From positions 248,001 to 312,000 of the forward strand of contig QPMI01000411.1 in assembly GCA_004431415.1 (NCBI GenBank): a DNA stretch of 64,000 nucleotides, read 5' to 3'. The translations under genes and the position numbers were made by a program. Position 1 is the stretch's first letter, and each line of letters starts with the position of its first letter. The notes beneath the pieces are model-generated. The model did no database searches. It was not told the DNA's origin and was given only the letters and a program-made list of their open reading frames with translations. Of this stretch, positions 16,800 through 43,600 are shown piece by piece. The DNA comes from Cyanophora paradoxa CCMP329 (Eukaryota > Plantae > Glaucophyta).

Positions 16800-17142
16800 C
16801 TGAGACAGCGCCGTCGGCAGACCGCGAAGCGAACGCCGAATCTCTTCGCTAACTGCCAGCGATGATTCGCCTCTAGCTCACTTGGCGGCAGCCTCCCGCA
16901 CTTGCTGGGCGCTTGCTTGTTCTTGTTGGCGCTACTGGGCGCTCGATCGAGCTGCTGCTGTCCGCGCACACCTCACGCTTCCACGCTCTCGTCGGCTGTA
17001 CCCCCTGTCTATGCGCCCCCCCTGTTTTGAAGTGTGTGAAGTCGAGCTCGCGCCCTGCAGCAGCAGCCAGTGCGGAATTCGAAGATTGAGAGCATTTAGA
17101 GCCTCCTTGCAGTCCGCGGCGATCGAGTGGCTTTAGGTGAAC

Positions 17143-20100
17143 ATGCCTCCGCCGGCGCCAGCGGCAGTTGAAGCTGCAGCTGCAGCGCCAGCCCCACAGC
17201 CGAACACGCCGTGCAGTGTGAAGCTGGAGCCCATGGCGCGTATGGCCCCTCACGAGCACCAGATAGCGGCGGCGGTCAAGCACGAGGTCAAGCAGGAAGC
17301 AGCGCTGCTTGCGGCGCCAGAGGCGACGCCCGCGACGGATCGATGCCATCGTGGATCGACCCCCGCTACGGATCGGCAGGGGCGCGTCCTGGACCTCACT
17401 TCGCCTTCCGCGGCTGCGGCCGGCCTGGAGGTCGCGAAGGTCAAGCGCGACTTGTCCGCCCTCAAGAAGGAGAAGCAGGAAGTGGAAGATAGCGACGACG
17501 ACGATCTCCTCAAACCGGATGCGAACCCGTTCGCAAAGAGGGCGAAGCCAGAGGTGGCCTGGGCCCTGCGGGAGCTCGCCCCCGGCGTCGGGGTCCACCC
17601 CGACCTCGCCAAGAGCCTCAAGCCGCATCAGCTCGAGGGCGCACGCTTCCTCTGGCGCGCTTGCGTCACGCAGGCCCGCCCCGCCCCTCCCCGGCACTCG
17701 ACCCCAGCCTGACGCGGTCGTACCCAGGCGGACGAGCTTCAGGCGGAGGTCGAGGCGGAGTACCAGAAACGCCTTCAGCGGGCCGCCTACCGGCCGAATT
17801 GGAAACCAAAGAAGCGCGGTCCGCCCGCCCTCCGCTTGCGTACCCGTCCGCGGCCTCATGGCGAGCAGCTGCGATCTGCGGGGGCATCTTGGCGCACTGC
17901 ATGGGCCTGGGCAAGACCCTCACGGTCCGCCGTACCCCCCTTTCCTCCGCCCCCGCCCCGCCGCGTCTCGCCCGGCGCCGAGCGGCCGCCCTGCAGACGA
18001 TCGCGTTCCTCCACACGCGGTTCATGGCTGAGAAAGAGGCCGGGCGCCCTCTGCCCTGCTTCCTCCTCGTGGTCCGCGCGCCCTCTCCGCCCCGAGATTC
18101 AGCAGTGCCCCCTGCAATCCCCTCGTACCCCCCGGCGGGCAGGTGCCGGTGAACACGCTGCAGAACTGGGCGGCGGAGCTGGAGCGGTGGATCCCGGCGT
18201 CGGCGCGGGTCATGCTGGTGCACGAGGTGCCGCAGGGGCCGGGGGTCGCCCTGGAGGACGTCGCGGACAGACTCGAGACTTGGCGGCGCCTGGGGGGCGC
18301 CCTCCTTGTCGGCTACGAGCGCCTCCGCGGCCTCATCCTCACCGAGGAGCACCGCAATCTAGGCGCGCCGATTCCGATATCCCGTACCCCCCGACCCGCG
18401 CGGCCGTTAATGAGGGTACGGCGGCAGTGAAGGAGACGGGGCGGGCGCAGTGCCGGGGGGCGCAGCGGGCGAACGACGAGGCCGTGCTGAAGGAGATGCG
18501 GAAGCGGGCGGAGCGGCTCGGCATCCACTTCTCCGAGGACGACGACGAGCTCCGCGGCCAAGTCCTCCGCGTGCGTACCCCCCGCCCGCTTTTTCGCGCA
18601 GCTGCCCCTCCAATCGCCTCGCCCCGCCCCGCCCCGCCCCGCAGAGCATGAAGGAGCGCTTCAAGCCGAAGGCGAACCGCAAGTTTAACGCGGCGCGCGC
18701 CCAGATCGCCCAGGACAGGCTCGACCGCCCCGGCCAGGCCCGCCCCCGCCCCGCCCCGCCCCTCCCTCCTCCCCCTCGCCGGCCGGGGTGCGACGGCGTG
18801 GGGCAGGAGACGGCGCGGCGGGTGCGGGACGCGCTGTGCCGGGCGGAGGGCCAGCGGTGCCCGCTGGACGTGGTGGTGCTGGACGAGGGCCACCGGTTGA
18901 AGGTCAGACATCCAGCTCGCCAGGATAGCTCGCCATGATCATGACCAGCGCCGCGGCGGACCCGAAGGCCGCGGAAACGCAGCTCGCCGTCGCCGTCGGC
19001 CTCGTCGAGGCCCGCCGCCGCGTCCGCCCCTCCCCGCACCCTCCCCGCCCCCTTCGCTCCGCTGAGGGCGAGGGCGGCGGCCCAGGCCGTGCTCACGGGG
19101 TACCCCCTGCAAAACAACCTCTGGGAGTACTACCACATGCTCAACTTCGTGAGGCCGGGGGCACTCGGTACCCCCCTCCCCTCCCCATCCCCGCGCGAAC
19201 GCGGCGCGGGCCGCTTAGTGGGGGGCGGGAACCCTCAGGGCCCGTGGAGTCCTTCTTTGACTCCTTCGTGTGGCCCATCGACCAGGGGACGTGCGCTCGC
19301 CCTCGCCCACGCGCCCCAGCGCCCCAGCGCCCTCTGAACCGAACGCGGGGCGGGGCGCAGGTGGAAGGACAGCAGCGAGGAGGAGGTCAAGCGCATGTAC
19401 GAGCGCCTCTTCGTCCTCCACGAGGCGAGTGGGGCCCCGCCCCTCCCCGCCCCGCCCCTCGCTTCCCGTCCCCGCTGCGCTCGCCGAACGCGCCCCCGCA
19501 GCAAGTTGCGCCCTTCATGGACCGGAAGGACGCCCGCGTGCTCACCGAGACCCTCTCCTCCCACAACCGCTCCCGCGCCGTGCGCCCCGCCGGCCATGCG
19601 AATGCCGCCTCGTTCCGACCCTGCCCGCCCGCCCGCCCGCCCGCCCGCAGAAGCACGAGTTCATCGTGCAAGTCCGGATGAGCCCCGAGGGGGTGCGCCC
19701 CCGTTCACCTCTTCCGCTGTTCGCGCGCCGACGCTTCGCGGTCTCGCCGCGCGCAGGAGAGGCTGTACGAGAGGTTGATCGCGGCGGTGAAGGCCGGGCG
19801 CCTCCTCCTCCCCAAGAAGGGCAAGGGCGAGGAGCAGGAGCAGGGGCGGGAGCAGCGGGAGGGGGAGGCGGAGGGGGGCCCCGAGGCGGAGAGGACGCGC
19901 CCGAACGTGCTCGTCACCCGCAGCGTCGCCATGAAGGCGAGCGGGCGAGGGGGGGCCCTGAGCGGGCTGAGCGGGCCCGCCCCGCTCGCCCCGCACTGAC
20001 GCCCCCCGGGCACCCCGCAGATCTTCAACAGCCCGGAGGTCCTCCGCCGCTTCCTCGCGAAGCTGCAGGAGGACAAGGCGCGCCCGCGCCCCGCCCGCCC

Positions 20101-22014
20101 CCGCACCCCCCGCCGGATCACTCACCCGTGCCCCCTCCCTCTCCCTCTTCAGGCCGCCGGCCTCGTCGTAGACGAGAACATAGAGGACGACGTGCGCGGT
20201 CGCTCGCTCGCGTACCCCTGCGCCCCGCCGACCGGCCCGCCGGCCCACACACACCCGCGCGCGCGCAGGAGTCGGCGGAGGGCGACGGGCCCGCCAAGCG
20301 CGTCGTCCGCGTGCGCCACTATATCTGTACCCCCCTGGCCTCCATTCCCCCTTCACGGCCCGTCAGGTGGACTACGGGGCCTTCGTGGAGGCCTCGTTCG
20401 CCTCGCGGGCGCCGTTCGGCCTCGCAGACGCGCCGAAGCTCGCCGCCGCCATGGAGATCGCCCGCCTCGCCGCCGAGCGCCGCGACAAGGCCCGCCCCCT
20501 CCTCCTCCTCCTTCGCTTCATTTCCTCCGTCCCTCGACGGGGCCTGCGGGTGCAGGTGCTGCTCTTCAGCGGCTGCAAGACGACGCTGAGGCTGGCGGAG
20601 GAGTTCGCCGTGTCCCACCTGGGGTACAAGCGCGGGGAGCAGGTCTTCTACATGGACGGCAGCACGCCCGCGGGGGAGCGCCAGAAGGCCGTCACGGACT
20701 TCAACAAGAGGCCGGGCGCGCGCCTCTTCGTCATCTCCACCGTCGCCGGCGGCATCGGCATCAACCTCGTCGCCGGTACCCCCGCGCCCATCCGTCCTCT
20801 CCCCCCCTACACCCCGCTCAGCGCGACGATCCGGTACCCCCCGCAGCAAACCGCGTGATTATCATGGACGCTTGCTGGAACCCCTGCCACGGTCTACCGC
20901 TTGCTTGCATCATGGACACTGCTGGAACCGCCCCGCTCTGAACCCGCGCGCCCGCAGACACACAGGCGCTTTTTCGCGCCTACCGTTACGGTAACCCCCC
21001 CCCCCCCCCCTCTCTCCCCGGACCCCGTCTCGCCCCGGGGTCTGCCCCCAAATCCCGCCTGCCCCGCTAAGGCTGGGCGGGGTACAGGCCAGTTTAAGGA
21101 TGTGTTCGTGTACCGGTTCGTCGCTGCCGGTACCCTCGAGGCTCGCGTCTACACCCAGCAGGCGCGCGCGTACCGCCGTACCCCCACGCGATTCGTGGTA
21201 GCCCCTCACATTTGATCCAGGTGGTGAAGCAGTCGCTGTTCCGCCGGACAGTCGACGTGCAGACCGTCTCCCGCCACATCGCCCGCCAAGACGTAGGAGA
21301 CTACCTGGCGGTACCCCCCGCCGGCTCGTTCCCCCGCGCTTTCGCCCCCGCTGAGACGGCCCCAGGTGCCCCTCGAGTGGCGGTACCCCTCCGGCTACGC
21401 CGATGTCGTGGTGAAGGACCCCGTGCTTCAGGTGCCCCTCTCCCAGCCAACATCGGGTCGTACCCCTTTCCTTACGGGGTACAGGCGGTCGTGGACACGT
21501 TCGCGGGCCCGAAGAAGAGCGGGGAGGGGGCGGAAGGGGGCCTCGGGGAGGAGGAGGAGGACGAGGAGGCGCCGAGTTTGGTGGAGCAGCTGGCGGGCCG
21601 GCCGCGGCGGCTAAGGCGGGGCGCGGGCGGGGCTGGGGAGCAGCGGCGGGCGCCGGAGGGGATGCTCCTCACGATGGTGCACGAGCACGAGTCGCTGCTG
21701 GCAGACGACGACCCGGGCGGCAGGTGCGCCCCAGGCCAGGCGCGAGCCCCCTCCGGAGATGACGTCGCTGAGGCGGCGGCGGCGGCGGGCGGCGGCGCAG
21801 GCTCTCGGAGCAGGACCGGGAGGCGGCGCGGGAGGAGGCGCGGGAGGCGCGCAGGCGGCGCCGGGCCGTCGTTGACAGCGAGGACGAGGGCGCGGGCGAG
21901 GGCGGCGGCGAGGGCGAGGAGGGCGTGGACGGGGCGGCGCCCGCCTCGAGCTCCGGCGGGCCCCCGCCCCACTTCTCCACGTCCGTGCCCCCGTTCGAAT
22001 TCTGGCAAAAGTGA
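17143..22014 (+). CDS. SNF2-family chromatin-remodelling ATPase, ATRX/ARIP4 (RAD54L2) subfamily, more than 20 introns
   Basis: [107 protein letters not shown]. Stop TGA at 22012-22014. The start may lie slightly upstream (about 17010). Confidence 0.93.
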
Positions 22015-23250
22015 CGAACTACCGTACGCGAGTACGTATAAGTACGATTGGCGCGCCGGCCCCGCGCGCGCGCCGAAGGGCCGGCGCGGCAGCGCCGCGG
22101 GCCGCACATGTCCGCGGCCGCGGCTGCAAGCTGGGGCTGCATGCGCTGTCCCGTGCCGGCGGGCTCGTGCGCGTCCGGAACCCGCCGCGATGGAGAATCG
22201 ATCTAGAGTCCGTGCAGCCTAGGCCTGCATCTGGCGCCGGTGCCAGCAGCCCGAGCGCGCATGCGCGATCTAGATCTGCGGGCTACAAATCCGGTTTCAA
22301 CCACTGAGTCGCCGTATAATACGTAACTGTCGCGCAACTGTCGCGTAACTGCCGCATTGTCCTTCCAGGTGGGTACAGGATCGCGCCGGCGCCGCGGCGG
22401 AAGATGGAACTCTAGGGCAAAGGCTGGGGCCAACTGGACCCAGGGCGAGCTCAAGTCGTTCATCAAAGCTGCAGTCGCAATCGTAGGTCGTCCGCGGAAT
22501 CGCCACGCCGCGCCTCGGTGACGCGAATCACGGCTCGCAGCTGTAGCTCGCAGCCTTTCAGATCGAAGTATTCCTATTCGGAAATTGACGCCGATAGCTG
22601 CTGAGCTTGCGCTGCATCGCCCATCCCATCGACCGTACACGCGTGGCGCATGCGCAGCACTCCAGCATGCACGATGGTCGAATCGTTGTCGTTCGTGGCT
22701 CAGTGATGCATGATCCCGATCAAGCATTCATCTGCCTCCTCGAGAGAAGCGCGCAACCGGCGATGCCGACGTGCTTATCATGATTAGCTGCAGGTTGCAA
22801 TTTGCGCATGCCTCCGTCAGCAAGCAGAGCAACCGGCAGCATAGCCTGTTTCATGATCGATATCAGAGCCTGCAGCTGATACAAGGGGCTTCCGCTTGAG
22901 TGTGGACTCGCAAGCGCTGCAGCTGGCGGCGCGGCACTGTACATGTGGCCCGGAGCCTGCTACCGCGCGCATGGGCGTGGCCGTGACCGCGCGTGTGGCT
23001 TTTGAGAGCAGCCTTCTCAAAGCATCAATAGCCGGCGAGCCGCGTCTGGCCCAGTCACTGAGTCATTTATGCACATGCACGTGTGGCCGCAAGCTGCGCG
23101 CTACGCATGTGCAAGGTCAGTGTCTGGCCCCCTACGCCTCTTTAACAAATCCGTACGCGTGTGACCTGCGAACTCGAAGCTAAACACAAGACCGCAGGTG
23201 CTGACTGCGACCACGAGTACGACCTCCTGCATCGGTGCACGTGGAAACTC

Positions 23251-26200
23251 ATGCCGCGTTTGCCAAAGAACCTTCTCGCGATCGTGCTCAACGCCCTTTT
23301 GGCGTTTGCCCTGCTCCACGATGCTGCATCTCAAGGTGAGCTCGAATCCGATCTTTCCTCTTCCGTGTCACCGCAGCGACGCAAACCCTTACCACCCCCT
23401 TTTATAATTACCTCTTACCTCGAGCTCTAGATCTAAGCCTGATCTCAACTTTAAGCCCCCCTGCTTCTCCGCCACGTGCCGCAATCCCCCCCCCCCCCCT
23501 CCCCCGCGCCCCCCCCCCCCCCCCCCCCCCGCGCCCCAACTCCCCTCCCCCTCTCAATCCCCTCCCCGTCCCTCCCAAGATACCCCCCCATGCCCATCCC
23601 CAATGTAGACCCCATCTCTCCTCCTAGGCCTCCTCCCCACCCCTCCTCAACCACATCCCACCCCTGCCTTTTCAATTCCCGCCCCCCCCCTCCTCCCCCC
23701 CACCCCTTCCTCCCTCCCCCCCCCTCCCCGGCCCCCAAAATCGCTCCCCGCCTGCCTCGCTATCTCCGCTTCCTCTCCGTGATTGAGTCAACTTGTTGAA
23801 CGCCTCACGACCCCGCTCAGCTCTTCCCCGCACTCTAGATCTCTCGTACTCCATTACCCTCCTCTCTGCAGCTCTCTGCAGCTCTCTGCAGCTACATTTA
23901 GTTCCACACCAAACATGGATTAATTGCAACTGCCTATGCGCGGTCAATGTCGCAGCGCCACCGCCCCTTATGTTCTGGACTGCACCCGCATGCATATGCG
24001 CAGCTGATCATCACCTCGCCGTAGATTACGCGGTGACAGCGGCCAGGTTCGGCGCACCGGCGGAATTCCTCCCGCGATCGATAGCGAGCGGCGTCCTCTT
24101 CCGAAACCGGACGAGTTCGAGTGCAACGCTGGAGCTGGCAGTCGTTGGTGGCAAGATTGCAGACGGATCTGGGCGTGACACGTTCGCTCAGGAGATCTGG
24201 ATCATCAATACAGGTGACCAGGCTAGCGCTTGCGCTCTAAGATAAACTCGCCGGTGCGATTTCTGGGCCACTCACGAACATTCGCATTCCGCGCCTGCGA
24301 CGAGCAGAAACTCGCGAGTGGAGGCTCTCTACAACGTCCATCCCTCCGGCAGTGTATGTCAGACACCCTCAGTGCGCGTGGGACGGCGACGACAGCATCT
24401 ACTGCTACGCATACGGCCGTGGTCAGACCTGTCGGCTCTCTGATGACATTCTGCGCATGCGCGGAAGCGCGTGCCTCCGGATCCCTGATGTGTCCCGTTG
24501 ACCTTTTGGCCTTTTTCAGCTCCAGGTAATGAGGCGGAGACATTCCCCTTGTTCTGGAGAAATAGTATCTCGACGGAGCGGAATGAAAGCATCAGAGCTC
24601 TTCCTGCAGCAAACTCGCTCCGCACGAGCCACTGCACTACATTCTATGCGGGCAACTTCTGGATGGCCACGGGCGAAGGACCCGCGTCTCTCGTGGTAAA
24701 CACTCCATACGGCTTTTTCAACGACCTCCTCCGGTACGGTCCCGAGTCTATAGCTCTGGGTCCCTTGTCGAACCGAATTCTGCTTTCCTCTTTGCTGCAG
24801 ATTTTCTGTCGAGTCGCAAACCTGGGCTGTCGAAATCGAGAACGGAAACAGTGATATGGCGCCCCGCTACAAAGCTGCATGCGGGCGGCTAGGTGAATCA
24901 TTTGGATTCGGCATCTTCACCATTCTGGCCATCAATCCTATGTATACGTCTGCATGTGCATTCTTTGAATCATCCGAGTACAGGTTCTCGCTGGTACTTT
25001 GTTGGAGGTTTCCTTCCGGGTGCACCCCTGTGCTGCGATGGTCTCATCCACGATACCAATGTGTAGTGAGCCGCTTAAGCGTCGTATTCGAGTCGAAGTG
25101 ACCATCCCCTATACGTAGCTATGTTGATCTGGCGGCCTCGACCAAGCGCTGGGTTCTCCTGTCGAACCTCACGAAGGTCGTCCCTCAGGAGAATTGGGGC
25201 TTCAACTTCCTAGAGCTATGCCAGGGTCTCCTTCTCTTGCCCTCTGGTAAGAAGCTTCTATACGCGTTTCGGTTTGAATTCCTTGACAGCTCTGCAGCTT
25301 ATCTGTTGCCGGTTGAATATTGGGGCGATCACGAAGGCTTTATCCTGCTGAATCCTGCCGGTGAACCACTTCATTCTCATATATATCTCATCAAGAATTC
25401 TTTATTGTTATTATTCCATCCTTCACCCCTTCATTCTCGCCCCCCTTATTCTTTCTTCTCGGCCATTGATCAGGATTCGCTTTCCGCCTTTATTATTATT
25501 CTTCACCATTTTATTCTGGAGGCCTTCATTCTTTATTAGGCTATTGACTCGCTTCCCGCCATGCATCCGCAGATGGAACAGTGGAGAATGTGTACAAGCA
25601 GGCAAGCAATGAGTTCGCAAGGTTAGGTTTCGAATATGCGGTGGCTACATACGACGTCGACGTCGATGCCACGGGCCAGTCCGCCTGCAAGCTGTTCGTG
25701 TTGAAGCGTTTGGTTCGGATGACAGAGCTCGGAGGTCTAAACTTTTTATTATACCTCTTTTCCCAGAATTGCTGCCGGAGTGAATCTGGGCGGTTTGTAC
25801 GAGCCGTACACAGGTGCTCTAGTAGAAGTGACAGGTGCGCGCGCGTGCTCTGATGTCGGAGCTCGGATCCCTTGGCCGAGCGCTCGCGGCTTTGCCTCTC
25901 ACACGTTGACCTCCCAGTGAACGTACCCGCGGTGACAGCGACCTGGTCAACCCCCTCCGCCGGCCAGATCGTCCAGAGAGGCTCAAGCGTGAGCACTCAC
26001 ATTCAGCCGCGCGCTCTGTTAGACCTGGTACTGTGTCACCAATGCCGTGTCTTTGGTCTGTCGCATTACAGCTGCGCGCGGTGGCTTCTTCCCTGAGGCG
26101 TGCATTCGGACCCGCATCGGTTGTTCTGACTGCCGCCGACAAAACCACGCCGCCCTCTGAGGTGAGAGCCCGATCACGAACCGCTTCGTAATCCCAACAT

Positions 26201-29200
26201 GAATATTTTGCTCTCACATCCTAATTCTGTGTGCGCGATTGCATTAGCACGTGTTCTTTTCTTCGGTCACACTCGCGAAAACCGGAGCGGACTTCACTGT
26301 GGCGATCCCGCTCGGCGTGAATGGTGGCTCCTACCGGATCCGCCTGCAACCGGCGAGCGGGAGCAGTCTTCAGACGCCGGCGTTCACGATTCCTTCCTGT
26401 GCGTTCATATATGCATCGCTTGCTAACCGCGGCCGCGAATCGTTTGTTATGTCGCTCATGATCAGGCTGACGTCGAAATGAATGCCGATCAGGGAGCCTA
26501 CTGGAGCTGAGCTCGTGGGCCGCGGGGTACGAGACCTGGGCGAACGCGTCGCTCGCGCTCCCGTGGAGTGCGGCGGCCTGGTCGTTCCCCCTCGAGGCGC
26601 ACCTCCTCCCGAGCCGCCAGAGCGAGATCCTCGTGCGCTGCCCTCCGGTTTCGCCATCGTCCGTGTTGCTTTTCTGAACGAGCGCATCGCCATCAGTCTT
26701 GGAATGGAGTCGTTCTGCACAGCACGTATCTGGACATCTCCCAATCCAACGCGGGAACCATGACTTTCGAGCTGCCCTCCAACACAACGGCTGGCGACTA
26801 CGTGATCCGCATTGTGGACGTGTCCGTCCCAACCATTCGTTCTCACAGGCTGACGAACTACTTCGTGGTCAAGCCCTCGGGTCCGTGCAACGCAATCGAT
26901 AAACTGGCTCTTCCTTTCCCTGACGACGAGTGAATATGCTTTGATGTAGGTGCCAACGATCCGCCGACTCTGGTGTGCTCGACAGCTGCGACAAGCCCAA
27001 CAAGCATCAGCGTCATCTGCAGCTTTGCGAAGATGCGTGGATTCGCATCTCTCACCCCAAACTGCACTGCTCCGCCAGGAGGGCTGTTCGCTGGGCAGCA
27101 CTTCGCCCGCTCCATCGCTGTGACAGATGCAGACTCTGCGCGCACAGCCATCGGCATTAGAGTGCCTTTGACGTACACGGGCTCTTACGCCCTCAACTGC
27201 TCAGTAAGAGCGCTCGCATCCCTTGGGCAGTCACTCGCTCACGAAAGCGCTGGATTGGCACTCGTCCCTCCTGGTGCGCCTGTGCATGCGCTGGCTGCCC
27301 TCGGCATGTTGATATAAGCGACTCGATCCGCAGCTGCGCCCGTGGCGCCATTGCAAACGTACATCTTCGAGATCCGCCCGATTGCAAATACGTACAGTGG
27401 ACGGATAGCTGTGAGCGTCCGCTTCGCAAAGGGACAGAGCGTCGCGGCGGTGGAGGTCGTCTGCTCGGGCCTCGGGGGTCCGTTCGCAAGCAACGCAACA
27501 GCGACGGATGCCGATATGCCGGAGTACGGTTTCAATGTTCACTTGCAGGCCGCAGCATACTTCAACGAGAGCTACGCCGCAACCTGCCGGTCGCGCGTGC
27601 GAGCTTCCACGGGCCTGGCGTCCGACTGGGTATCAATCCCAACGGTGACGATGGATCCGGGTGCGGGCCGATCATCTGCATTCTGCCGACGAGCTGCCCT
27701 GTGTCTCAATCTGACATGGTGCTTTGCAATTGGGGGCTGCCACAGCTCCTCCGTGGACGCCCGAGGCCCAAGTCGTTTCCGTCAACGCAACTAGCGTCAC
27801 GTTGCAAGTGAAATTCATGGCGAATCAGAGCGTGGTGAGAGTGCTGGCTCAGTGCTCAAGCATGCAGCACTATGCCTCCTACCCTGGCTGGGTCGGTGGT
27901 GAATACCACACGTACGCTGCGGTGACGGACGGCATGGCTTCGGGGGTCAACCTCACCGTGGGCGTTCCGCCCTCGTACAGCGGCAGTCTCCAGATGATTT
28001 GTTTAGCACGCGTGTTTTCTTTCTTGGATCAAATTTCACAGCTACCAAATTTGTTTTTTTCGCCCATTCCGGTGACAACACTTCCAGCAGGTCGGGGCCG
28101 TCTTTGATTCTCAACGATTTGCTCTTGATCCCATATACACTCCACCCCTGAGCTTTTGGGTGGGGATTCGCAGCTGCTCCAGGGGCTCCACTGGAGGTGG
28201 CTGTCATCTCCATCAACGCGACACAGGCGGTCGTTCGCGTGCGCTTCGCTACAGACCAGAGTGTGGAGTTGGTGGAGCTGGAGTGTCTGGGAGCGGGCGT
28301 CCCTTCCGCGCACGCTTTCAACGTCTCTGCAACGGATCCACAGGTGCCGGCGGGAAGCGTCACCTTTTCCATGGGAGTCGCTGCCACTTCGGAGGGCAGC
28401 AACTCTGAGCTCAGCTGCGCGGCGCGCGTCCGATCTTCAGCAAACTTGACGTCGCCCTGGACCTCGATGGCTCCGGCGACGATACCGCCAGGTGCGCCGA
28501 GGCGGTTTCGATTCCCTGCGCGCGAGCGGCGCGTGCCCTGTCTCACGATCGCGCGCGCTTCTCCAGTTGCGCCATTGGCGCCTCTGGATGCTGCCATCGT
28601 CTCCAAGAACGCTACGCACTTGGTGGTACAAGTACAGCTGAACGTGGGCCAGAGCGTGGCAGCAGTGGAAGTCAAGTGCACATCTGGTAATGCGGCGAAC
28701 GATGCAACTGCGACGGCGACGGGTGTTGCATCGTTTTCCGTCAATGTCAGCGTGCTCTTCGTTCCGGGGTATGGTGGCGGCTACGAGCTCAGTTGCTCGG
28801 CGCGAGTGCGAGCACCGACGGGCCTGACTTCGGAGTGGACAGCGGCCGGAGCCACGCATGTGCCTGCAGGTCTGAGCCAACTGCATAGCTTTTGAAAGCT
28901 AGCGCTACTCTCCCTGCGCACTAGACTCATGCTCGTACTTTCCCGACGCAGCTGCGCCGCGGGCTCCACTGGACGTGACAGTCATACCCTCGACCGCGAC
29001 GCGTGTGGTGGTGCGGGTGCAGTACTCGTCCGGCCAGAGCGTGGCGGCGGCGGAGGTGGAGTGCTCCGGTTATGGCGGCCCGTATGCGGCAAACGCGACG
29101 GCAAGCAGCGCCGCATCGTCAAGCGTCGAGTTGAGCATTCCGGTCGTGCCGTCGTACGGCAGCGGCTACGCGTTGAGCTGCGCGGCGCGAGTGCGAGCGA

Positions 29201-32200
29201 CAACGGGTCTGGCGTCAGAGTGGACCTCGGCGGCCCCAGCCCTCCCGTTTGAGCTTCCCTCGAGCTCGCCGACGCCGACAGCTCCCCCATCCCCGTCACC
29301 TTCATCGCCGGCGCCGACAGCTCCCCCATCCCCGTCCCCTTCTTCGAGCCCTGCGGCTCCACCGAAACCAACGCCCTCCGCGTCGCCGTCAATATTCGCC
29401 ACGCCCTCGAGCTCCGTGCCGACACCAAGCCCGACGGGCGCCGCAACGGTCTCGTCCGTGACCGTCACGTTCTGGCTGTCGGTTCCCGCGACGCGCGAGG
29501 AGTGCCAGACGTACATGCAACGGCACACGCCCGCGTCCGTGTCTCAGGGGTTTGCTCGTCTACTGGCGACCGCTCTCCGATCGGATTTTGACGAAGTGCG
29601 CTCTCGTCCCTTTCGTTCTACCCTGTTTTCTTCTGCAAGCAACGCGGGCCGCAGCGACGGGTGAAGATCGCCGACATTCAATGCGGGTCGATCATGTTTC
29701 GCGTTCAGGTGCGAATGCTTTCGAAATGAATCGAGGATGCCTGCTAGTGTCGCACGCAACTGCTCGTCGGCGACCGCCTAACGCGGCAACCGTGTGTGCT
29801 GCGCAGGTTCTGGAAGCCGCATCCGCGTCGTCGGCGGCGTCAGCTTCTGCAGCGCTCCCGGACGCTCTGATCCTCGAGACGGTTGCGAACCTCACGCGCG
29901 CGGGCCAGTTGCTCATGCCCGGGCTCGACGACCGGCCCGTCTCCGTCCTTTTCAACGCCTCGTTCGCGGCGGGAGTGCAGCCAATGGGCGCCGCCGGCGA
30001 GGCGCTCGCGCGCGGCGAGAGCATCTCGTCGTCCGGGCAGCAGCAGCAGCAGCCGTCCGCCGGGCAACCTGCCTCGACGCCGGGCTCCGCCGGGGTGTCA
30101 GGCGGCGGCGGCTCGCCTGTCGCCGCCGCCGCGGGCGCTGCGGCCGGCGCAGGCGTCGTCGTGGTCGCGGTCGCTGTGTGCTTCGCCGTGTACTGGAAGC
30201 GGAGGCGCCTGTACGCCAACGATCAGTCCGGCGATGTTGCCAACGCGCCTTTGTTCTTCTCCACCGATCCGCCGGACTGGATCCTGCAGACGGTGAGCGT
30301 GTTGAGCTCGGCCAGCGATGGCTCATCGCCCAGCGTCTGGGTCCGTCTCCTGCCCACGCAGCGGGCCGCTCAGCGCCCCCCGCCCCTCACGTGCAGCAGA
30401 TCGAGTTGCCGCCGCTGAACGAACAGGAGGAGCTCGACCTGCTCGGACGACAGCAGCCGGCGGGCGCCTTCGGCGGAACCAACGCAGCGCTCGGCGCAGA
30501 CGCGAAGGACATGACGCTTGTGCAGCGCGCCGGGCTCTTCCCTCCCAAACCAGTCTCGGAGGAATTGCTGAAAGCCGTGCGGGAGCCGCTCAGGTGTCTC
30601 GGAGAGGGCGCCTTCGGCCGCGGTGCGTCGTGCTCCCTCGCTTTGCTGTACATATTCTCGCGATGAGAGCCTGCTCCACGCAGTTTATGCCATTTCCCTG
30701 CCCGAATCGGCGGCCACCTGGCTCCGCGGCGAGGCGGGGTTTGGTGGGCGCGGCGCGGCGTCGGCGTCGGTATATGTATCGTTCGTCGCGGGTTCGAGTG
30801 CCGACGCTTCCGACGCCCCACCCCGGATGATCAAGCGAGCCGTCAAAGAGGTCTCCCTGAGCAACCTCCAGGCGCGTAAACGCGGGCTCGAGGAAGTGCT
30901 CGAATCGGCAATGAACTAAATTTAAAGCCGCGCATACCGCAGATCGCCGCGCGCGAAATCCACGGGGCCCGTCTGCAAAAGGTGCTCCCCATTGCTGTAT
31001 CGTCGAAGCGGGCCTAACGTTAACTGACATCCGCGCTCTCGCCAGTCATGCAACCACCCGAACGTCCTGCGCTGCGAAGCCCTGTTCACGGATCGCCTCA
31101 AGCTGTACATTGGTGCGTGTTATCCTCGTGCGGGATACACCGCCGGCGCCAGCGCCTATTTTCGTGTTTCTTTGTATTCTCATCCGAATGCGTCGCAGTG
31201 CTGCCGCTTGCTGAGATGTCGCTGAGCGCCATGATCGCCTCCTGCGGTGTGCTCCCCTCGCACCTCGTCACGTCCTTCGCCCTGCAAATCGCCTCGGGTC
31301 CGTCCTCGCCGCTCGAGCTCGACGCACCGCCGGCTCGTGGCAATGTACATGTTCTCGGCCGACCGGCGCCGGGCTTGGCGCAGGGATGGCGTACCTGCAC
31401 CACGAGCTGCCGCGGCCGGTCGCCCACCGCGACCTCAAGCCCCAGAACATCCTCGTCTTCCGCGGCGTGCGTGCTTTGTTGCAGCTGCTACGACGGTGGT
31501 TTTTCACACGCGCGCGCGCCATCAGCGCGATGGCTCGGAGCCGCAGCTGCTCGTCGGAGATTTCGGTGCGTGAAGCAATCGTGCCCCTAAGCTCACGATC
31601 GGTTTTATGACAGGTATCCTCGCGCTCTCTGCTAATTACAAGGTCGATTCCCCCGCGCAGGCATCTCAAGGCACGTTGAGACAGCAATGTCCCTTCGCGG
31701 CACCTTGTGCGCTTCAATCTGAAATTTCCCATGGCCATCAAACAAAGATCTAGACCCATCTTTCATGATCATCAAGTAGAGCGCTAGAACCCTTCAACCC
31801 GTTCGAATTCGCATCCATGCACCAACGCTCTGACAGGATCTATCTCCCACCCGAGACCTACACGAAGAACGACCCTGCCAAGGCCGACGTGCGTTGCATG
31901 TGGCGGCTCGAGCTTGCCGTTCCGCGCTGGCGCGCCGACGCGTGCGTGTGCGCACAGATCTGGGCCTTCGGCATCGTCCTCATGGAGATGGCGACGGGGG
32001 GGAAGCCGTACGGGGGCGCCGCCATCGGCCCCGAGCACCTGGTGAAGGGGCAGCCGTTCCCCCGCTCGGCCTTCGGCGCCGTGCCGGAGCGGCTGCGGCC
32101 CCTCGCCCGCTCCTGCCTCGCCTTCGACATGAAGAAGCGCCCCAACTTCCTGTGCGCCCGTTTTTCTAGATCCGCGCGACGCGGTCATAACTTTGACCTT

Positions 32201-32507
32201 GGCGGTCGCGCAGGGAGATCCGCCGGACGCTGGAGGGCCTCCTGCAGCAGCCGGCGGCGCACGCGTCCTCTGCGATCTCGCCGCTGCAAGCAGCCGCAGC
32301 CGCAGGCGTGCACGGGAGCTCGGGCTCGAGCGCTTCTCCACCCGCGCCATGGCCAGAGCCAGGGGCGGCGAGCTTGGGCTTGAGCTTGGGGCTGCCGGTT
32401 GCAGGCCCCCTCGACAGTCGCCACCTCGACGCAGCTGCAGGCGCCGACGCCGTCTTCACCCCGGATCCGTCAATGCCCGCGGGGTATCAGTAAACGCCGT
32501 GTTCTAA
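23251..32507 (+). CDS. Receptor-like Ser/Thr (TKL-type) kinase: signal peptide, long ectodomain with six FN3-like repeats, Pro/Ser stalk, SEA-like module, TM, kinase
   Basis: Signal MPRLPKNLLAIVLNALLAFALLHDAASQ; six repeats ending C-x-x-RVR-x-x-x-G/N-L-x-S-x-W (variable); TM AAAGAGVVVVAVAVCFAVYW-KRRR; kinase motifs LGEGAFG, RAVKE, HPNVL, HRDLKPQN, DFGISR, GTLIYLPPE, ADIWAFGIVLMEM. Exons in 23340-26200 are unresolved, so the first ~3 kb could belong to a separate gene. Confidence 0.82.
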
Positions 32508-32569
32508 AGATTTGGATGGTTCCGGCACCCGCTTTAAAGATTTAACGATTATGCTTTTCTTGAATTCAA

Positions 32570-32594
32570 TTGATATCTATTGAATAGATATCAA
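32570..32594. repeat. 12-bp inverted repeat with 1-nt spacer (TTGATATCTATT-G-AATAGATATCAA)
   Basis: The arms are exact reverse complements; it lies in the AT-rich spacer between two convergent genes. Confidence 0.85.
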
Positions 32595-33072
32595 AGAATC
32601 TAATATTATGTATACGTATGCATACGCGTGTGACCTTCCAGGCCCTCTCTTTCAATCTAGTACTAGTTATGCGATTGTTTCGAATCCGAAGTTAGTTTAG
32701 TTTGTTAAATAGTCCTAGTCCGAAGCCTTGACGTCGACGAGCTGATCATCACGTCGTCGCGCGGCAGTAGTTCTTTTCTTGATCAGCGCGACGTCGACTT
32801 CTTTAGCTAGTATCATAGTATTAGTCGAGAGATCGATGATATCGATCCTGTTACTAGTATTTCTACCCGCAAAGGATGCGACGTCGACTGGATTGTTGAT
32901 TAACGAATCGATTTTTCACATTTTAGCTGATATCGCGATCGATGGCACATATGCATCGAAACCGAAGACAGCCGCTCTCCGACGGTCTAAAGCGGGTCTA
33001 GATCTGTCTACAGACTCTGAGAGATGAAAGGTGGAATTCGAAGGGCGGGGAAGGGGGCGGCGGGGGGCGGCG

Positions 33073-34946
33073 TCAGACCCACTTGCGCCACTTTGCGATG
33101 GCGCAGAAGGCGAGGGTGGAGGCGCCCATCTCGCCCAGCACGCCGTAGAAGGCCCCCAGCGGCGCCCCGTCGTCCGTCTTCTGCCACTGCGCCCGAGCCG
33201 AGTCGGGGTTGGGGGTTGGGGGTTGGGGGGGGGGGGGGGGGGGGGGGGGGGAGTGCGGGGGGCGGGGTACCGGGATGTTGACGTTCATGGAGAGGACGGA
33301 GCAGACGAGGAAGTGCCACATGAGGATGACCCCGATGAGCCCCGCCGTCTGCGGCGAGCCGGCGACCGGTGAGCGGCGGCGGGGCGAGGGCGAGCAAGGA
33401 AGGGGGCGGGGAGGGGCGCCTTGGAGATGCCGGCGACGCCCTCGGTCTGGACGGCGATCTCGTGGGAGATCTTGGCGTGGAAGGAGGACTGCAGGGAGAG
33501 CAGCGTCTCCCGCGCCCGCTCCAGCTTCCGCAGCATCCCCCGCACGTGGTCCCGCACGTCCCTGCCCGGTCGGACGGTCAGACCGGCAGGCAGCCTGGCG
33601 CCGGCCGGGAGGGGGCGGCCGCGCCGGAGGTAGACGGTGATGTCCTCCTGCGGCGGGGAGCCGGCCTCGGCCCCCGCTTGCCGGTCCGAACGCATGCGGA
33701 TCAGCAGCGCGCTCAGGACCTGCCCCCGGCCCCGCGTCGGCCGCAGCGCAGCGCAGGGCCCGGCGGGGGGCGCGCACGTCGCGCTTCCTCTGGAGGAGGT
33801 CCCGCAGGGCGGCCGCCCTTCGCCGCGCCATCGCTATCCTCAGCACAACCTGCCGCCCCGCCCGTCGGCGCCGGCGCCGGCGCGGGTTCGAGCCCGGGCG
33901 GGGCGGGGCACCTCCGCCTCGTCGGTCTCCCCGAGCAGCAGCACGAGGTCGTCCAGCGAGCGCACCTCCTCCACCACCTGCACCCGGGGCGGTCGGGTGG
34001 GGGGATGCTCAGGCACGAGAGGGGTACGGCACCTCCGCGACGAGGGGCACGAATCGGTCGACGATCGCGTCGAGGAATGCGTAGCAGAGCCAGCGGCCGG
34101 AGGGAAGCTGCCCGGGGGCGTCGACGTCAGCGCGGGCGGCGGGGCGGGGCAGGGCGGGGCAGGGCGGGGCGGGGCGAGGCGGGCGGGCGGGCGGGCGCGA
34201 GGGGCGGCTGGCTCGCCTGGCGCTGGCCTGACTTGTGGGTGCGCTGGAGGCGGCGGGTGCGGGCGAGGACGTGGGAGAAGGCGGAGGTGGGGGAGGCGTG
34301 GAAGGAGAGGACGCCGTTGTCGAAGACGACCACGTTGACGGCCTGCCGCAGCGTCAGCCGCGCCGCCGCCGGCCCCTCGGGGCGACAAGGGAGGGAGGGG
34401 CGCGGCTCGCCAGGGCGCGGAGGGAGTCGCTGGCGGAGGGGTCCAGCACCAGGTCGCGGAAGCAGACGAAGATGTACTCGTCGAAGAACTCGACCTGCGC
34501 CCCGCGTGCGCTCACCGGAGCGCGCTCTTTTAGGAGACGCGCATCGCACCTTGTCGATGGTATCGCTCTGGAAGCAATCCTCGGCCGTGACGGGGTGCAG
34601 CCCGAACGCGCTCTCCATGCCCTGAGGGGCGGCGCGCGCTCAGCGGGTGCCGATCGATGCGCTCTTAAGCGCGCCCACGCGCCTGCATCTGCTCGACGGT
34701 GGGGCACTCCACGTCGAGCCAGAACCGCTGCTCGCGCTTCCGGCACGTCCGGCAAAACTCCTCGAGCTGGGCCGCGCTCACAGGCTCCTCTACAAGCTTC
34801 TCACCGCTGATGCTGATGATGTTCGAGGCCGGCGCTCGCTGGGCGACTGTGGCCGTGTGGAGGCCGTGCGAGTCGTCGGGATGGAGCAGCCGCTCCAGGC
34901 CGCCGCGCTGGCCCGCGCGGTCGGTGAGAGCGTCCATCCCCGCCAT
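33073..34946 (-). CDS. CorA/Alr1/Mnr2-family divalent cation transporter
   Basis: FWLDVECPT; AFGLHPVTAEDC; KVEFFDEYIFVCF; CYAFLDAIVDRF; VYLR-DVRDH; two C-terminal TMs around VLSMNVNIP-WQ and AFYGVLG. Stop TGA at 33073. Confidence 0.9.
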
Positions 34947-35252
34947 TGCGCGGGGCCAGCGCCGCGCCGAAGCCCCTCAGGGCTGGGAAGCCGCGAGGGC
35001 GCTGCTCCGAGCGGGACGCGATCCAAAAGTCAGCGGGCTGTGATAACGATGTCCTAGAGCGTCAGAGAGAGTGCGCGGGATGCGCAGCCCCGGACTTGTC
35101 CTGCGGCAGGCGGGTACAGGTGCAGTTCGCAGGTGCAGCTGAAGTTCGCCGGGCGCAGTGCAGCCAGCGCTCGCGTTCGTGACAAGGTGCTTTTCAAGCG
35201 CCCCGGTAGCTAGGATCCACTAGGCGCCGCCAGGCATCAAAGCGGCACCAGC

Positions 35253-37633
35253 ATGTTCGCGTTCCGGGCCGCGCTGCGTCGTGTTGCGGAGGCCGCGACG
35301 CCCGGTGCGCGGGTTGCGCCCGCTTCCTCCCCGCGCGTCGCGTCGCTCACCGGGCCCGCAGCGTTTCGGCAGTGCACGAGGCAGTTCCGCGTGCACGGCG
35401 CCGCGAAGGACGCGGCGAAAGAGTCAACAGATGTAAGCGCAGCTCTCGAAATTGCCCGCGGACTGCGCTCGTGCCGCGCGCCTGACTTCTCGCGGCAGAC
35501 CGCGTCGAGCGCCAGCCCGTCGTTCGTGCTGGCGCTCCGGGAGCTCGGCCTGGCGTGCGCGTCGCTCTACGCGGCGAGCGCGCTCATTGACGACGTGAAG
35601 GAGCGCATCGAGCGCGCCGACCTGCTGCAGCAGCTCAAGCAGGAGGTGCGGGCGCCGCGGCGGCACCGCCGGGGCGGGCCCTGACCGGCGCGGCGCAGAT
35701 TCCCGGCTTCGTGGACAGCACGGGCCGCTTCAGCGGGGCGCTGGGGGAGAGCGTGGAGAGCGAGAGCCGGTGGAAGGCGGTGGTGGCCCTCTCGGGCTCC
35801 GCCGCGCTCCCCGCCATCGCGACGATGCTGCACGTGCCCCTCGCCAAGGCCGCCGAGGCCCTCCTCCCCGCCGCCGCCGCCGCGTCCGCCCCGCCCCGCA
35901 CCGCTCTTCCCTCCCCCGCCCCGCGGCTGAGGCGCGGCGGGGGCGCAGGGCCAAGCCGGCGCCCCCGCGGAGCGCGCTGGCCGTCGTCGGATTCGTCGCG
36001 GCGCTCATCGTCACGCGCCAGGCGCCGCCCCCCGCCCGCCCCCCGCCGGCGCCGCGGCGCGGGGAGCGAGCGCGGCAGCGTGCGCAGGTGACGATGGCTC
36101 GGGAGGGCCTGCGGGAGCAGCCGAAGGAGCTCTTCAACTTCACCGCAGACGCCGTCGACGCCTGCGCCGCCGCTCCCATCGCCCACGTGCCCCGCCCGGC
36201 CCCGGCCCCGGCCCCGGCCCCGCCCCGGCCCCGCCCGCCCCCGGCGACGCCGGCCGCAGGAGATCTTCTTCCGCGGGCTGGTGATGCGGCGGCTGATCCC
36301 GGCGGTGGGCCTCTGGCCCGCCCTCCTCGCCTCCACGCTCCTCTCCGTCGCCTCCTCCACCTACGACCAGGCGCCCCCGCGCCCCGCCCCGCCCGGTGCC
36401 CGCTGCTTCGCTGAGCTCCGCTGCGGCCCGTCCGCCCGGCAGATCCGGCCCTACCAGGAGATGATCCGGAACCCGCCCACGTCCAACGACGAGGCCATCG
36501 TGCAGGCGCGCCCCGCCCTTCCTCCGCCCTCCCGCCCCGTCCGAGGCCGGGGGCCCTCTCAGGAGCGGCCGGTGAACGTGCCCTTCTACACCGCCAAGCG
36601 CGCCCTCGCGGAGGCGCGCTCTGCCCCGCCCCGCCCCGCCCGAACGCCGTTCCCGACCGCGGCGGTGCGCAGGCGGCGTCGAAGCGGGACTGGGCGGCCG
36701 CGTGGGGCGCCGCCAGCGCGGCCTTCAAGGTGCTGGCTGCGCCCCGCGAGCCCGCGGCCGCTGCTCCGCATCTTAGATCGAATCTTTCTCGCAGGCGTCG
36801 ACATCGGAGTCGCCCCTGGGGGTCCCCCGCGACGAGTGCGCGCGGGGCGGCGGCGCGGCCGGCCCTGCCCCGGCCTTCTGACGCCGGCCGCCTCGCCCGC
36901 GCAGGTGGGCCGAGGCGGAGGCCGACGAGGCGAGGCGGACCTCTCTCCTCAAGGCGCGCCCCCGCCCCGCCCCGCCCCCGCGCCCCCGCGCTTCCCCCGG
37001 CTCGGTTGCCTCACGGGACGGGGCGGCAGGCGATCAAGATGTCGTACAAGACCGGCAAGGGCGACGACCGCAAGGAGGTCGCCCTCTCCGGTGCCCCCTG
37101 CCCCGCCCCGCCCCGCCCCGCCCCAAGCCCGCTGCTTGCCGATCCCTGCTGGCGCAGACGCGAAGGGGAAGACGGGGATGCGCCTCGCGGCGCAGGTGGA
37201 GGAGGACATGGCCCGCGCGGAGCAGGCGCCCCCCGCCCCCCCCGCCCTGCCCGGCCCCGCCCGGGCGCAGCTGACGGCGCGGGAGGGCAGGCGCGGCAGC
37301 AGCTGCTACAGCACTTCGCGGAGCGGCGGGAGGAGCAGCGGAGGGCCTTCCTGCAGGTCGGCGGCGGCCTCTTCGCCCTCGACCCCACCGGCGGGCCCAC
37401 CGCCGGCACCGTCTGGCGCGGCCTCGTCGTGCGCGAATTCGATCCGCTCGAATTGATCTCAGGCTCGCGCGTCCTTCCAACTAAGAGTGCGGGGGCAGGT
37501 GCACGCGCCGCCGTCGCTGCTGTACGGGACGGCGTTCGCGGCGCTGGGGGCCTCGCTGCCGGCCGCCGTCGCCCTGCACGCCGCCGTCGCCTCCGCCATC
37601 TACTTCGAGGAGCGCCTCCACCTCGCCTACTAG
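35253..37633 (+). CDS. CPBP/Abi (type II CAAX protease-like) membrane protein, degenerate, with putative mitochondrial presequence
   Basis: N-terminus MFAFRAALRRVAEAA is Arg/Ala-rich. The spliced motif AAPIAH-EIFFRGLVMRRL...GLWPALLASTLLS resembles CPBP motif 1 (APxxEExxFRG), and C-terminal GASLPAAVALHAAV resembles motif 4. Stop TAG at 37631-37633. Confidence 0.6.
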
Positions 37634-40614: not shown

Positions 40615-43600
40615 CTACTTGCGGAGGGGCTTGCCGCCCTTGCGGTTGATGGCGATGTCGAGGACCTGGCCGCCCTCGACCGCCGCGTAGCCGCCGCGCA
40701 CGGCGTGGCCCGGCGACCGGTTCGCCCGCGCCGCCGCGCCGGCGCCGAGCTTGCCCTCGTCGTGCGCCGCCTCCTCCTCGCCGAGGCTGGCGCGCGTCTG
40801 GGGCGACGTCGACGTCTCAATGGGCGGCAGCCGGCGGGGCATCGAGCTGGTCGCCGTGCTCAGGGGCGCCTCCGCCTGCGCCTCGGCCGCCGCCTCCTCG
40901 GCGATGGTCGAGGGCTCCTGGGAGCGGGCGCGGCGGGACGAGCCGGAGCGGGGGACGCCGAGCTTGGCGTCGCGGCTGCGCTTGAGCTCCGCGTTCACCT
41001 CGCCGAGGGCGGGGTTGACGAAGACGACGCTCTTGCCCGTCGCGCCGGCGGCGTCGGTCGACTCGGCCGCCCGCACCTCCATCGACGGCGAGCGCAGCGA
41101 GACGGGGCTCCGCGGCGACGAGGCCCGCGGCTGCTCCGCCTGCTCCTCGGGCTCCTCGGGGGCGACGGCGTTGTTGGTGGCCTGGAGGCGGCGGAGCGGG
41201 TTCCACTGGCTCTCGCCGCGCTTGCGGAGCGAGGGCTGGCGGGTGAGGACCGACGCCATCTGGGTCACCACCGCGTCCGCCTCCTCGTCCTGCTCGCCGG
41301 CGGGGGTCGTCGAGGGGGCCTTGCCGAGGGCGCGGGCCTTGACCGCCGCCGCCGCCGAGGCGCGCACGCGGGCCACGGCGCGCTGGCGCCGCACGACGAA
41401 GATGCCGACGACGACCGCGATGACGACAACGCCGCCTGCGCGGGGGCCGGGCCGTCAGCGCGGGCCGGAGGGGGCGGAGGAGAGGGTGCGCGGCGGGGCG
41501 CACCGACAATGCCGGCGACGCCGGCGGCGACGCCGACCGGGAGGCCGGCGATGGTCTGCGGCTGCGCCTTGCTGCTGGAGATGCGGTCCACGGTGATCGA
41601 GGTGCCGAGCATGCTCGAGGCGCTGTTGAGGGCGAGGCCCTGCGCGTTGGCCGACGCCTGGAAGTGGTCCAGCGCCAGGCCGACCGACTCCTCCATGCCG
41701 GCCGGGGCCCGCACGTTGGCCGTCAGCTCGAGCGCGTCGTCAGAGGCGGCGGCGCGGAGCCTGCGGGCCGGCTTCTTGCTGTTGCCGCCGCTGCTGCCGC
41801 CGGTGCTGGTGCTGGTGCTGGTGGCGGTCGGGACGCAGCGGATGGTGGCGAGCTTGACCGTCGCGGCCGGGACGTTGAGCACGTTCTTGAGGTCGTTGAG
41901 GATGGCCTTAGCGAGGTCGCTCGTGAGGGCGCTGCAGGGGACGTTCTGGAGCGAGACGGTGAGGGTGCCGACGCTCGAGAGGGTCGCCGTGCGGGGGACG
42001 GCGGCGCTCGTCGGGATGGACGCGTCGTCGACGTAGTCGGCGAGGTCCGCGTCGGTGAAGAGGGCCGCCACGGGGATGTCCGTCGCAGCCGTCGAGGCCG
42101 CCTTGCCCGCCGCCGGCGACGTCTTCACGAAGGCGCGCGAGGCGGCGAGGGGCGAGCCGGTGAGGCCCGAGAAGGCCTGCACGACGTCGATGAAGTAGCC
42201 CGAATCGGCGGCGAGGCCCGAGATGGTGGCGGTGGTCGCGCCGTCGGCGACTGTGACCTTGACGGCCGCGCCGCCGGCCAGGGGCGTCGCCGAGGCGACG
42301 GTGGTGGTGGTCGGGGCGGCGTTGAGGCCGAACATGGCGCCGGGGACGGTGCCGGGGAAGGCCGCCGCGCTGAACGCCCACCGTGTGAAGCTGACCGTGA
42401 TCGAGGCCGCCGTCTGCGCCGTCACGGACGAGGTGATGCCCGCCGGGAACTCGACCACGCTCGTGGCAGCGCCCAGCTGGCGGGCCTGCGCGCGCCAACG
42501 CATCAGGCGCCGGCCCGCGCGCCGGGGGCCGGGGCGGGGGCGGGGCGGACCTGGCCGGTGCGGACGAGGACGAGGCGGACGTCGTAGAAGGTGCCGGCGA
42601 AGACGGCGCGGTTCATCTTGTACGAGTCGCCCACCGAGACGAGCAGCGAGGCGTCCTCGTACTTGGAGAGGGCCTCCGACGCCCAGCGCGCGCTGTTGAT
42701 CGCGTAAGACTTGCCGTGCTCGTAGAGGCCGACGGCCCAGTCGCGGCAGCCCTTGTACTTGCGCGAGTAGCCCAGGCCGTCGGCGAGGTCGTCGTCGTCG
42801 GTGCCGGCGTCGGCCTTGGCGAGCAGCGTGCGGCGGCCGGCCACCGGCTGCGTGCTCCCCGCCTGCGACGGGCCCCACTGGATCCGCACAGTCGTCACGT
42901 TGACGAGCGTCGCGGTCACCCACTGCGGCTGCAGCCGGCAGCCTACGCGAGGATGCGCGTCAGGCGCGGCTCGCCGGGGCGAAAAGCGATGGCCGCGCAC
43001 CGAACTCGTCGAAGCCGGGAAGGGGAGTAGCCTTGGGGGCCTCAGCAGCCGGCGCCGGGGCGGCCGGGGCAGGGGTCGAAGCCGCCGGCGCCGGGGTCGA
43101 GGCGGCCGGGGCAGGGGTCGAAGCAGCGGGCGCCGGGGTCGAGGCGGCCGGGGCAGGGGTCGAAGCAGCGGGCGCCGGGGTCGAGGCGGCCGGGGCAGGG
43201 GTCGAAGCAGCGGGCGCCGGGGTCGAGGCGGCCGGGGCAGGGGTCGAAGCAGCGGGCGCCGGGGTCGAGGCGGCCGGGGCAGGGGTCGTCACCGCGGGCG
43301 CCGGGGTAGTCACAGCGGGCGCCGGAGTCGTCTCAACGGGCGCGGGCGCCGGGGTAGTCACAGCGGGCGCCGGGGTAGTCACAGCGGGCGCCGGAGTCGT
43401 CTCAACGGGCGCGGGCGCCGGGGTAGTCACAGCGGGCGCCGGGGTAGTCACAGCGGGCGCCGGAGTCGTCTCAACGGGCGCGGGCGCCGGAGTAGTCACA
43501 GCGGGCGCCGGGGTAGTCACAACGGGCGCCGGAGTCGTCTCAACGGGCGCCGGAGTCGTCACAACGGGCGCCGGGGTTGCGGGCGCAGGCGCCGGAGTCG

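Follow-up and report, generated by a model that had tools for sequence, protein, structure and literature searches.

The window analysed here is a stretch of 64,000 nucleotides from the glaucophyte alga Cyanophora paradoxa CCMP329 (contig QPMI01000411.1 of assembly GCA_004431415.1, positions 248,001 to 312,000 of the forward strand), and all coordinates below are counted from its first letter. The window has a G+C content of 70.7%, and short introns are densely packed in it. Three genes carry the introns examined: an SNF2/ATRX-like helicase gene (17143-22013, plus strand), a CorA-like Mg2+ transporter gene (33073-34946, minus strand) and a CPBP/Rce1-like gene (35253-37633, plus strand). GC in place of GT opens 19 of the 51 introns of these genes (37%), including 8 of 26 in the SNF2 gene, which was checked against RNA. 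A first-pass annotation, made from the DNA letters alone, had estimated that about a third of the introns are of this GC-AG type (GC at the donor, AG at the acceptor), which agrees with the count, and all of its intron coordinates proved correct.

The 2019 genome paper of C. paradoxa reports a GC content of 67.6% and 9.2 introns per gene of 86 bp each. Among 65 eukaryotes compared in PMC6142364, C. paradoxa was the sole one with a higher GC content in introns than in exons, and the three genes studied here point in the same direction (introns 80.1% G+C, exons 70.6%). We found no published statement on GC-AG introns in Cyanophora; the term 'GC-AG' is absent from the 2019 genome paper and its supplements, as are 'donor' and 'splice' in the splice-site sense, and an earlier mention in the 2012 genome paper is possible. 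The published Cyanophora gene models already include GC donors.

Three intron-rich genes and their GC-AG introns

The SNF2/ATRX-like gene starts with the ATG at 17143, ends with the TGA at 22011-22013 and has 27 exons and 26 introns, the removal of which leaves an open frame of 1032 codons. The joined translation was used for this frame test, and the homology searches were run exon by exon. The exons match the Pfam domains SNF2-rel_dom and Helicase_C and carry the SNF2 motifs, and the exon with motif VI has ATRX as its top structural match. Short SNF2 exons compared with Pfam and PDB gave no match spanning the junctions at 18738 and 19425.

RNA evidence for this gene came from assembled contigs of sequencing runs. 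Seven runs that we guessed to be RNA contained 0.43 to 0.48 of the words sampled from 17400-23399, and the two best runs of unstated kind (2012) contained 0.71 and 0.88 of them. We placed the contigs of three RNA-like runs from two studies (X1, X2 and X6) and of the better of these two 2012 runs (X13) on the region 17000-22500. The contigs of X1, X2 and X6 had zero letters differing from the window and 28 joints, each of which is a precise deletion. The contigs of X13, in contrast, were unspliced: they had no joint, their letters were identical to the window, including those at the seven of the eight SNF2 GC donors that they span, and X13 behaved as DNA.

For each of the 16 joints with readable ends, all placements allowed by the ambiguity of the joint were enumerated, and exactly one of them was bounded by G[TC] and AG. 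Eleven of these introns are GT..AG and five are GC..AG. The first of the five, 17674-17727 (CAG/GCCCGC), is given by a joint from 17670 to 17725; this joint and those of the next three introns are found in X1, X2 and X6 and absent in X13. The second, 18363-18427 (TAG/GCGCGC, phase 1), is given by a joint from 18360 to 18426, the third, 19937-20020 (AAG/GCGAGC), by a joint from 19934 to 20019, and the fourth, 20078-20152 (AAG/GCGCGC), by a joint from 20075 to 20151. The fifth, 20490-20555 (AAG/GCCCGC), follows from two contig pieces, 20367-20487 and 20554-20774, which adjoin each other in all three RNA-like runs. The intron at 19937-20020 has no internal GT and contains an in-frame TGA, as had been noticed in the first-pass annotation. 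All five had been proposed there, and these contigs demonstrate directly that the five GC-AG introns are removed from the SNF2 mRNA.

The other three GC-AG introns of the gene, 18738-18806 (CAG/GCCCGC), 19425-19501 (GAG/GCGAGT) and 21162-21220 (CAG/GCGCGC, with an in-frame TGA at 21213), are supported indirectly. The record lengths between the anchored contig pieces (224, 560, 140 and 306 letters) are the same as the exon totals in the model with 26 introns, and the 13 joints that are not displayed consist of ten modelled introns and three odd joints. The three introns as first proposed are consistent with these lengths, with the number of joints and with an open frame. Lengths and frame by themselves do not single them out, because stop codons are rare at such a GC content, and 1740 alternative solutions for the undisplayed SNF2 introns satisfy both.

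Each of the three has some further support. At 18738, the contig resumes at 18804, which means that the upstream exon ends in CAG after a non-G base; the only donors that fit are 18719 and 18738, and both are AG/GC. At 21162, if the acceptor at 21220 is used and the other five introns of the block are as modelled, only the GC donors 21162 and 21168 keep both the frame and the letter count in a check by hand. The intron at 21162 fits the record length of 306 letters, and the preceding exon, which ends in YDRQ, can be aligned over its whole length with residues 906-929 of ATRX. The intron at 19425 fits the record length of 560 letters, the joint count and the open frame, and its removal gives what we take to be the usual spacing of the 'LHE-QVAPF' motif.

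The CPBP-like and CorA-like genes were matched to published gene models. Word searches with the stop-free frames that bear their exons led to one EukProt protein each, P0001 (466 amino acids; tig00020556_g11049.t1) and P0002 (395 amino acids; tig00020556_g11048.t1), and both proteins match the window exactly, residue for residue. Names of the form 'tig..._g....t1' are those of the 2019 C. paradoxa assembly (the text of PMC6704402 has tig0021589_g22709 and its supplement tig00001098_g7066.t1). Together with the intron density, these names favour Cyanophora over Emiliania huxleyi or a pavlovophyte as the source, and the density alone excludes Aureococcus and Micromonas. The models are gene predictions made with RNA-seq hints. 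Contigs encoding the first SNF2 exon frame or P0001 were also sought, and no match was on record.

The CPBP/Rce1-like gene (Pfam PF02517) has 16 exons and 15 introns, and P0001 has one sole exact spliced mapping to the window, with those 15 introns. Six of them are GC-AG introns, exactly the six that had been called before: 36022-36087 (CAG/GCGCCG), 36371-36442 (CAG/GCGCCC), 36506-36562 (CAG/GCGCGC), 36614-36672 (GAG/GCGCGC), 36954-37029 (AAG/GCGCGC) and 37226-37290 (CAG/GCGCCC). The intron at 36371-36442 is 72 nucleotides long, in frame and stop-free, and so could be retained as far as the sequence is concerned.

The CorA-like gene has 11 exons and 10 introns; its product matches Pfam PF01544 at 2.9e-33 and the CorA protein of Thermotoga maritima. 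Where at least three GC-AG introns had been expected, the published model has five, given here in the order of transcription on the minus strand: 34622-34682 (CAG/GCGCGT), 34343-34410 (CTG/GCGAGC), 34108-34216 (CAG/GCGAGC), 33562-33624 (CCG/GCGCGG) and 33349-33419 (AAG/GCGCCC). The second and the fourth lack an exonic AG. For the donor at 34410, the sequence as read offers no in-frame AG/GC alternative. The donor at 33624 is the CG/GC junction within YLR/DV that the first-pass annotation had singled out, and the model uses it; the peptide YLRDVRDH that spans this site has a gap-free alignment with YFRDVYDH, a conserved segment in Thermotoga CorA.

Two further observations concern this pair of genes. 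GMN is the signature pore motif of the CorA family, and the pore exon here (33271-33348, minus strand) has SMN in place of the GMN of Thermotoga CorA ('vlsmnv' against 'iygmnf'). The starts of the CorA-like gene (minus strand) and the CPBP-like gene (plus strand) lie head to head with 306 bp between them (34947-35252), and the two genes probably share a bidirectional promoter region.

Exon context of the donors and character of the introns

The GC donors are almost confined to exons that end in AG. An exonic AG precedes 17 of the 19 GC donors and 8 of the 32 GT donors (Fisher p = 8e-6), and in the SNF2 gene alone it precedes all 8 GC donors and 3 of the 18 GT donors (p = 1e-4). When the two exon positions are taken separately, G at -1 is found at 19/19 GC donors against 20/32 GT donors, and A at -2 at 17/19 against 13/32. 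Within exons, only 5.1% of GC dinucleotides follow an AG, compared with the 17 of 19 at GC donors (binomial p about 2e-20). Seventeen of the 19 GC introns are in phase 0 after a codon that ends in AG. The longer pattern AG/GC[GC]C[GC]C is carried by 12 real donors and occurs only twice within 5.7 kb of exon.

The same dependence is seen from the side of the intron. After an exonic AG, C stands at intron position +2 in 17 of 25 introns, a share that does not differ from the 81% of C among all intronic C and T (p = 0.13). After any other exon end, C at +2 is found in 2 of 26 introns and is strongly depleted (p = 2e-15). The first-pass annotation had described a near-strict exonic AG|GC rule. The association holds, and the strictness does not: because of the two CorA donors at 33624 and 34410, the exonic AG/GC is a strong preference and no strict rule.

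Knowledge of the exon end also improved intron prediction. A home-made predictor blind to this context recovered about 75% of the introns exactly and called 25 GC donors where 19 are true. With the exon-end context trained on two genes at a time and tested on the remaining one, 42 of the 51 introns were recovered exactly, compared with 38 before.

Apart from the letter at +2 and the exon end, the GC and GT introns are alike. The introns of the three genes are 50 to 109 nucleotides long, with about 80% G+C and 49% C on the sense strand. GC introns have a length of 69 nucleotides and GT introns of 66, and both classes have a common G-Y-G-C-G-C-C-C start and GCAG end. The consensus from +3 to +8 and the repeat content are also common to both, and positions +3 to +6 do not differ between the classes. 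On their intron side, the donors show hardly any canonical signal. GC donors match CAG/GTAAGT at 4.6 of 9 positions and GT donors at 4.3 of 9. In a compensation test, GC donors matched the consensus better than GT donors on the exon side only, at -2 and -1.

Comparison of all 51 introns against one another showed no shared full-length family, and the matches found (78-89%) were of low complexity and in shifting registers. The C-rich (CCCCG)n content aligned between GT and GC introns as often as within either class. A branch-point-like motif, CT[GA]A[CTG], lies 11 to 31 nucleotides from the 3' end in 18 of 51 introns, and none of the 51 has a U12-type start ([AG][TC]ATCC).

The introns of the three genes (17.1-22.0 and 33.1-37.6 kb) have several other features. 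They have runs of (CCCCG)n, and their acceptors are not preceded by a T-rich tract. In the 1773 nucleotides of SNF2 intron, the motif CGTACCC(C) is seen 14 times, where 0.75 occurrences are expected from composition, and is present in 13 of the 26 SNF2 introns, at the donor itself (19168, 20776 and 21311), just behind the donor (17925, 18571 and 21162) or near the 3' end. It is found with both donor classes; the CPBP introns have none and the CorA introns two. The intron at 21432-21484 contains a GTACCCC...GGGGTAC hairpin.

Explanations for the GC donors

We propose that these are ordinary U2-type introns, about a third of which have C at +2, compensated by an exonic AG under GC pressure, and that the GC and GT introns form one population. 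We hold this reading to be very probable. Since C at +2 reaches a near neutral level after AG and is rare otherwise, the GC and GT introns appear to be one population and not two of separate origin. The proposed mechanism has three parts. A 5' splice site would need a minimum of pairing with the 5' end of U1 small nuclear RNA (snRNA), and at a later stage U5 would contact the end of the exon. The site would tolerate the missing pair at +2 only where A at -2 and G at -1 supply two pairs. The strong G+C pressure on the genome would then convert GT to GC wherever the site tolerates C. This account of U1/U5 pairing and mutational drive fits the observed donor contexts. The first-pass annotation had likewise suggested a spliceosome relaxed at +2 with compensation at exon positions -2 and -1, and the data are in line with that suggestion.

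Several points weigh against this reading. The RNA check covers one gene, and three of the eight GC introns in that gene have indirect support, while those of the CPBP and CorA genes are taken from gene predictions. All 51 introns come from one 64-kb window. The two CorA donors that lack an exonic AG do not conform to it. The contigs carry no information on the efficiency of splicing, and GC introns could be retained more often than GT introns. Furthermore, the canonical 5' end of U1 is ACUUACCUG and the canonical U6 box is ACAGAGA, and positions +4 and +6 of the donors, which are mostly C, are unpaired with either. The pairing argument therefore presupposes a canonical U1.

The weakness of the intron side and the apparent neutrality of +2 after an exonic AG lead to a second possibility, that donor choice might rest on the exon end, through contacts with U5 or U1, together with the composition of the intron, possibly with an altered U1 5' end or altered U1C/Luc7. 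We consider it unlikely; if it were true, Cyanophora would be a natural system in which to study how splice sites are defined when U1 pairing is minimal. No RNA gene was returned by scans of the window for Rfam families and tRNAs, and hence no snRNA gene lies in it.

Another explanation is that the splicing machinery itself has changed, for instance at the 5' end of U1, in U1C/Luc7 or in its U6 contacts, such that GC is as good as GT and the start G-Y-G-C-G-C is read directly. The +3 to +6 consensus (GCGC) departs from GTRAGT in both donor classes and is unpaired with canonical U1 or U6, the match to the canonical site is only about 4.4 of 9 positions, and the survey in PMC10639083 found U11 as the sole minor snRNA in C. 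paradoxa and suggested a transformed minor splicing machinery. On the other hand, the need for A at -2 and G at -1 is what canonical U1 predicts (3'-..UC..-5' opposite AG), and the C at +4 and +6, like the GCGC as a whole, may simply reflect base composition in introns with 49% C. A changed machinery is in our opinion quite unlikely.

It is also conceivable that the GC-AG introns derive from a mobile 'introner' family whose copies have a GC donor and insert at AG/G, as in the alga Micromonas pusilla, in which 79% of GC donors lie within introner elements (PMC4815162). The C-rich (CCCCG)n stretches common to the introns and the excess of CGTACCC in the SNF2 introns would suit such an origin. 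However, only low-complexity matches were seen, they cross the GT and GC classes, a full-length family is not seen among the 51 introns, and CGTACCC occurs with both donor classes and is absent from the CPBP introns. We regard this origin as very improbable. Finally, an artefact, whether from a wrongly assembled +2 letter, from junctions placed incorrectly or from genomic DNA mistaken for RNA, is scarcely credible, for although the RNA label of the runs is a guess and contigs drop rare variants, DNA cannot give rise to more than 20 precise deletions that all have G[TC]..AG borders and restore the SNF2 frame, the independent 2012 DNA run has the same letters without joints, and the joint placements are unique.

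Comparison with known systems places the ordinary U2-type reading in context. GC 5' splice sites make up less than 1% in animal and plant model species (Sheth et al. 2006, PMC1557818), and the view that GC-AG introns are about 1% in most eukaryotes and frequent in some algae, on which the first-pass annotation had relied, agrees with that study and with PMC4028052 and PMC4815162. In animals and plants, the sites with C at +2 match the consensus better elsewhere, which compensates for the lost U1 pair (PMC1557818). Cyanophora is similar in showing compensation and differs in that the compensation is almost wholly exonic (A at -2, G at -1), with +3 to +6 being GCGC-like and not nearing RAGT.

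Among algae, the closest case is the haptophyte Emiliania huxleyi, with GC donors at about 60% of junctions, checked by reverse transcription PCR (Feldmesser et al. 2014, PMC4028052). E. huxleyi is likewise GC-rich, GC is among its major donors and the acceptor stays AG, and predictors limited to GT mis-model its genes (PMC4028052). It differs in being a haptophyte and not a glaucophyte, and in having GC as the majority donor, compared with about a third of donors in Cyanophora. No exon-end rule is stated in the accessible part of PMC4028052. In Micromonas pusilla CCMP1545, an alga with 65% GC, 25.6% of donors are GC (van Baren et al. 2016, PMC4815162). Here too a GC-rich alga has many GC donors that gene prediction initially missed. 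In M. pusilla, however, the GC donors go with introner elements (79% in D-IE1), while no such family splits the GC and GT introns of Cyanophora, and intron density is far higher in Cyanophora. The pelagophytes Aureococcus and Pelagomonas have 14-17% GC-AG introns (bioRxiv 10.1101/2024.10.30.620910); their share is also high and has been ascribed to genome GC content, but they have fewer than one intron per gene, compared with about nine in C. paradoxa. The authors of the E. huxleyi and pelagophyte reports both ascribe the GC donors to high genomic GC (PMC4028052; bioRxiv 10.1101/2024.10.30.620910). Cyanophora is a further case of the pattern known from GC-rich algae, to which it adds a clear context rule and no new splicing mechanism. 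Judged by the splice-site literature consulted, the glaucophytes would be added to the haptophytes, prasinophytes and pelagophytes as GC-rich algae with many GC-AG introns, apparently independently.

There is a practical consequence for gene prediction. In a genome with about nine introns per gene, a predictor that bars GC donors errs at up to a third of the junctions, and one that allows them freely calls false GC sites; the AG/GC rule is a cheap prior between the two. The donors also offer a clean example from nature of epistasis between positions of the 5' splice site, with C at +2 being near neutral after AG and strongly selected against otherwise. In the proposed reading, compositional pressure would alter a splice signal up to the limit set by the machinery.

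Other loci in the window

At 59136-64000 on the plus strand lies a large gene that runs past the end of the window and encodes a Cys-rich repeat protein, the start of which is IPT/TIG-like. A word search for this gene (59-62 kb), over the length range used, yielded no gene model. The context-blind predictor gave it nine GT donors, none of them after AG, which is weak evidence in agreement with the AG/GC rule, and also two doubtful GC donors, of a type that was false in 8 of 10 calibration cases.

The stretch from 23000 to 31500 has a lower G+C content (54-65%), and both of its strands are rich in open frames of middling size. Pfam gave no match for ten frames taken from 25-31 kb and 50-51 kb, seven of which lie at 25.1-28.9 kb. 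The 23000-31500 stretch may be intergenic or a decayed repeat.

An open frame on the minus strand at 42960-44402 contains long tandem repeats rich in Pro, Thr and Ala (TTPAPVE, STPAPAA) and adjoins fibronectin-type-like frames at 41.3-45.9 kb. It looks like a gene for a mucin-like surface protein.

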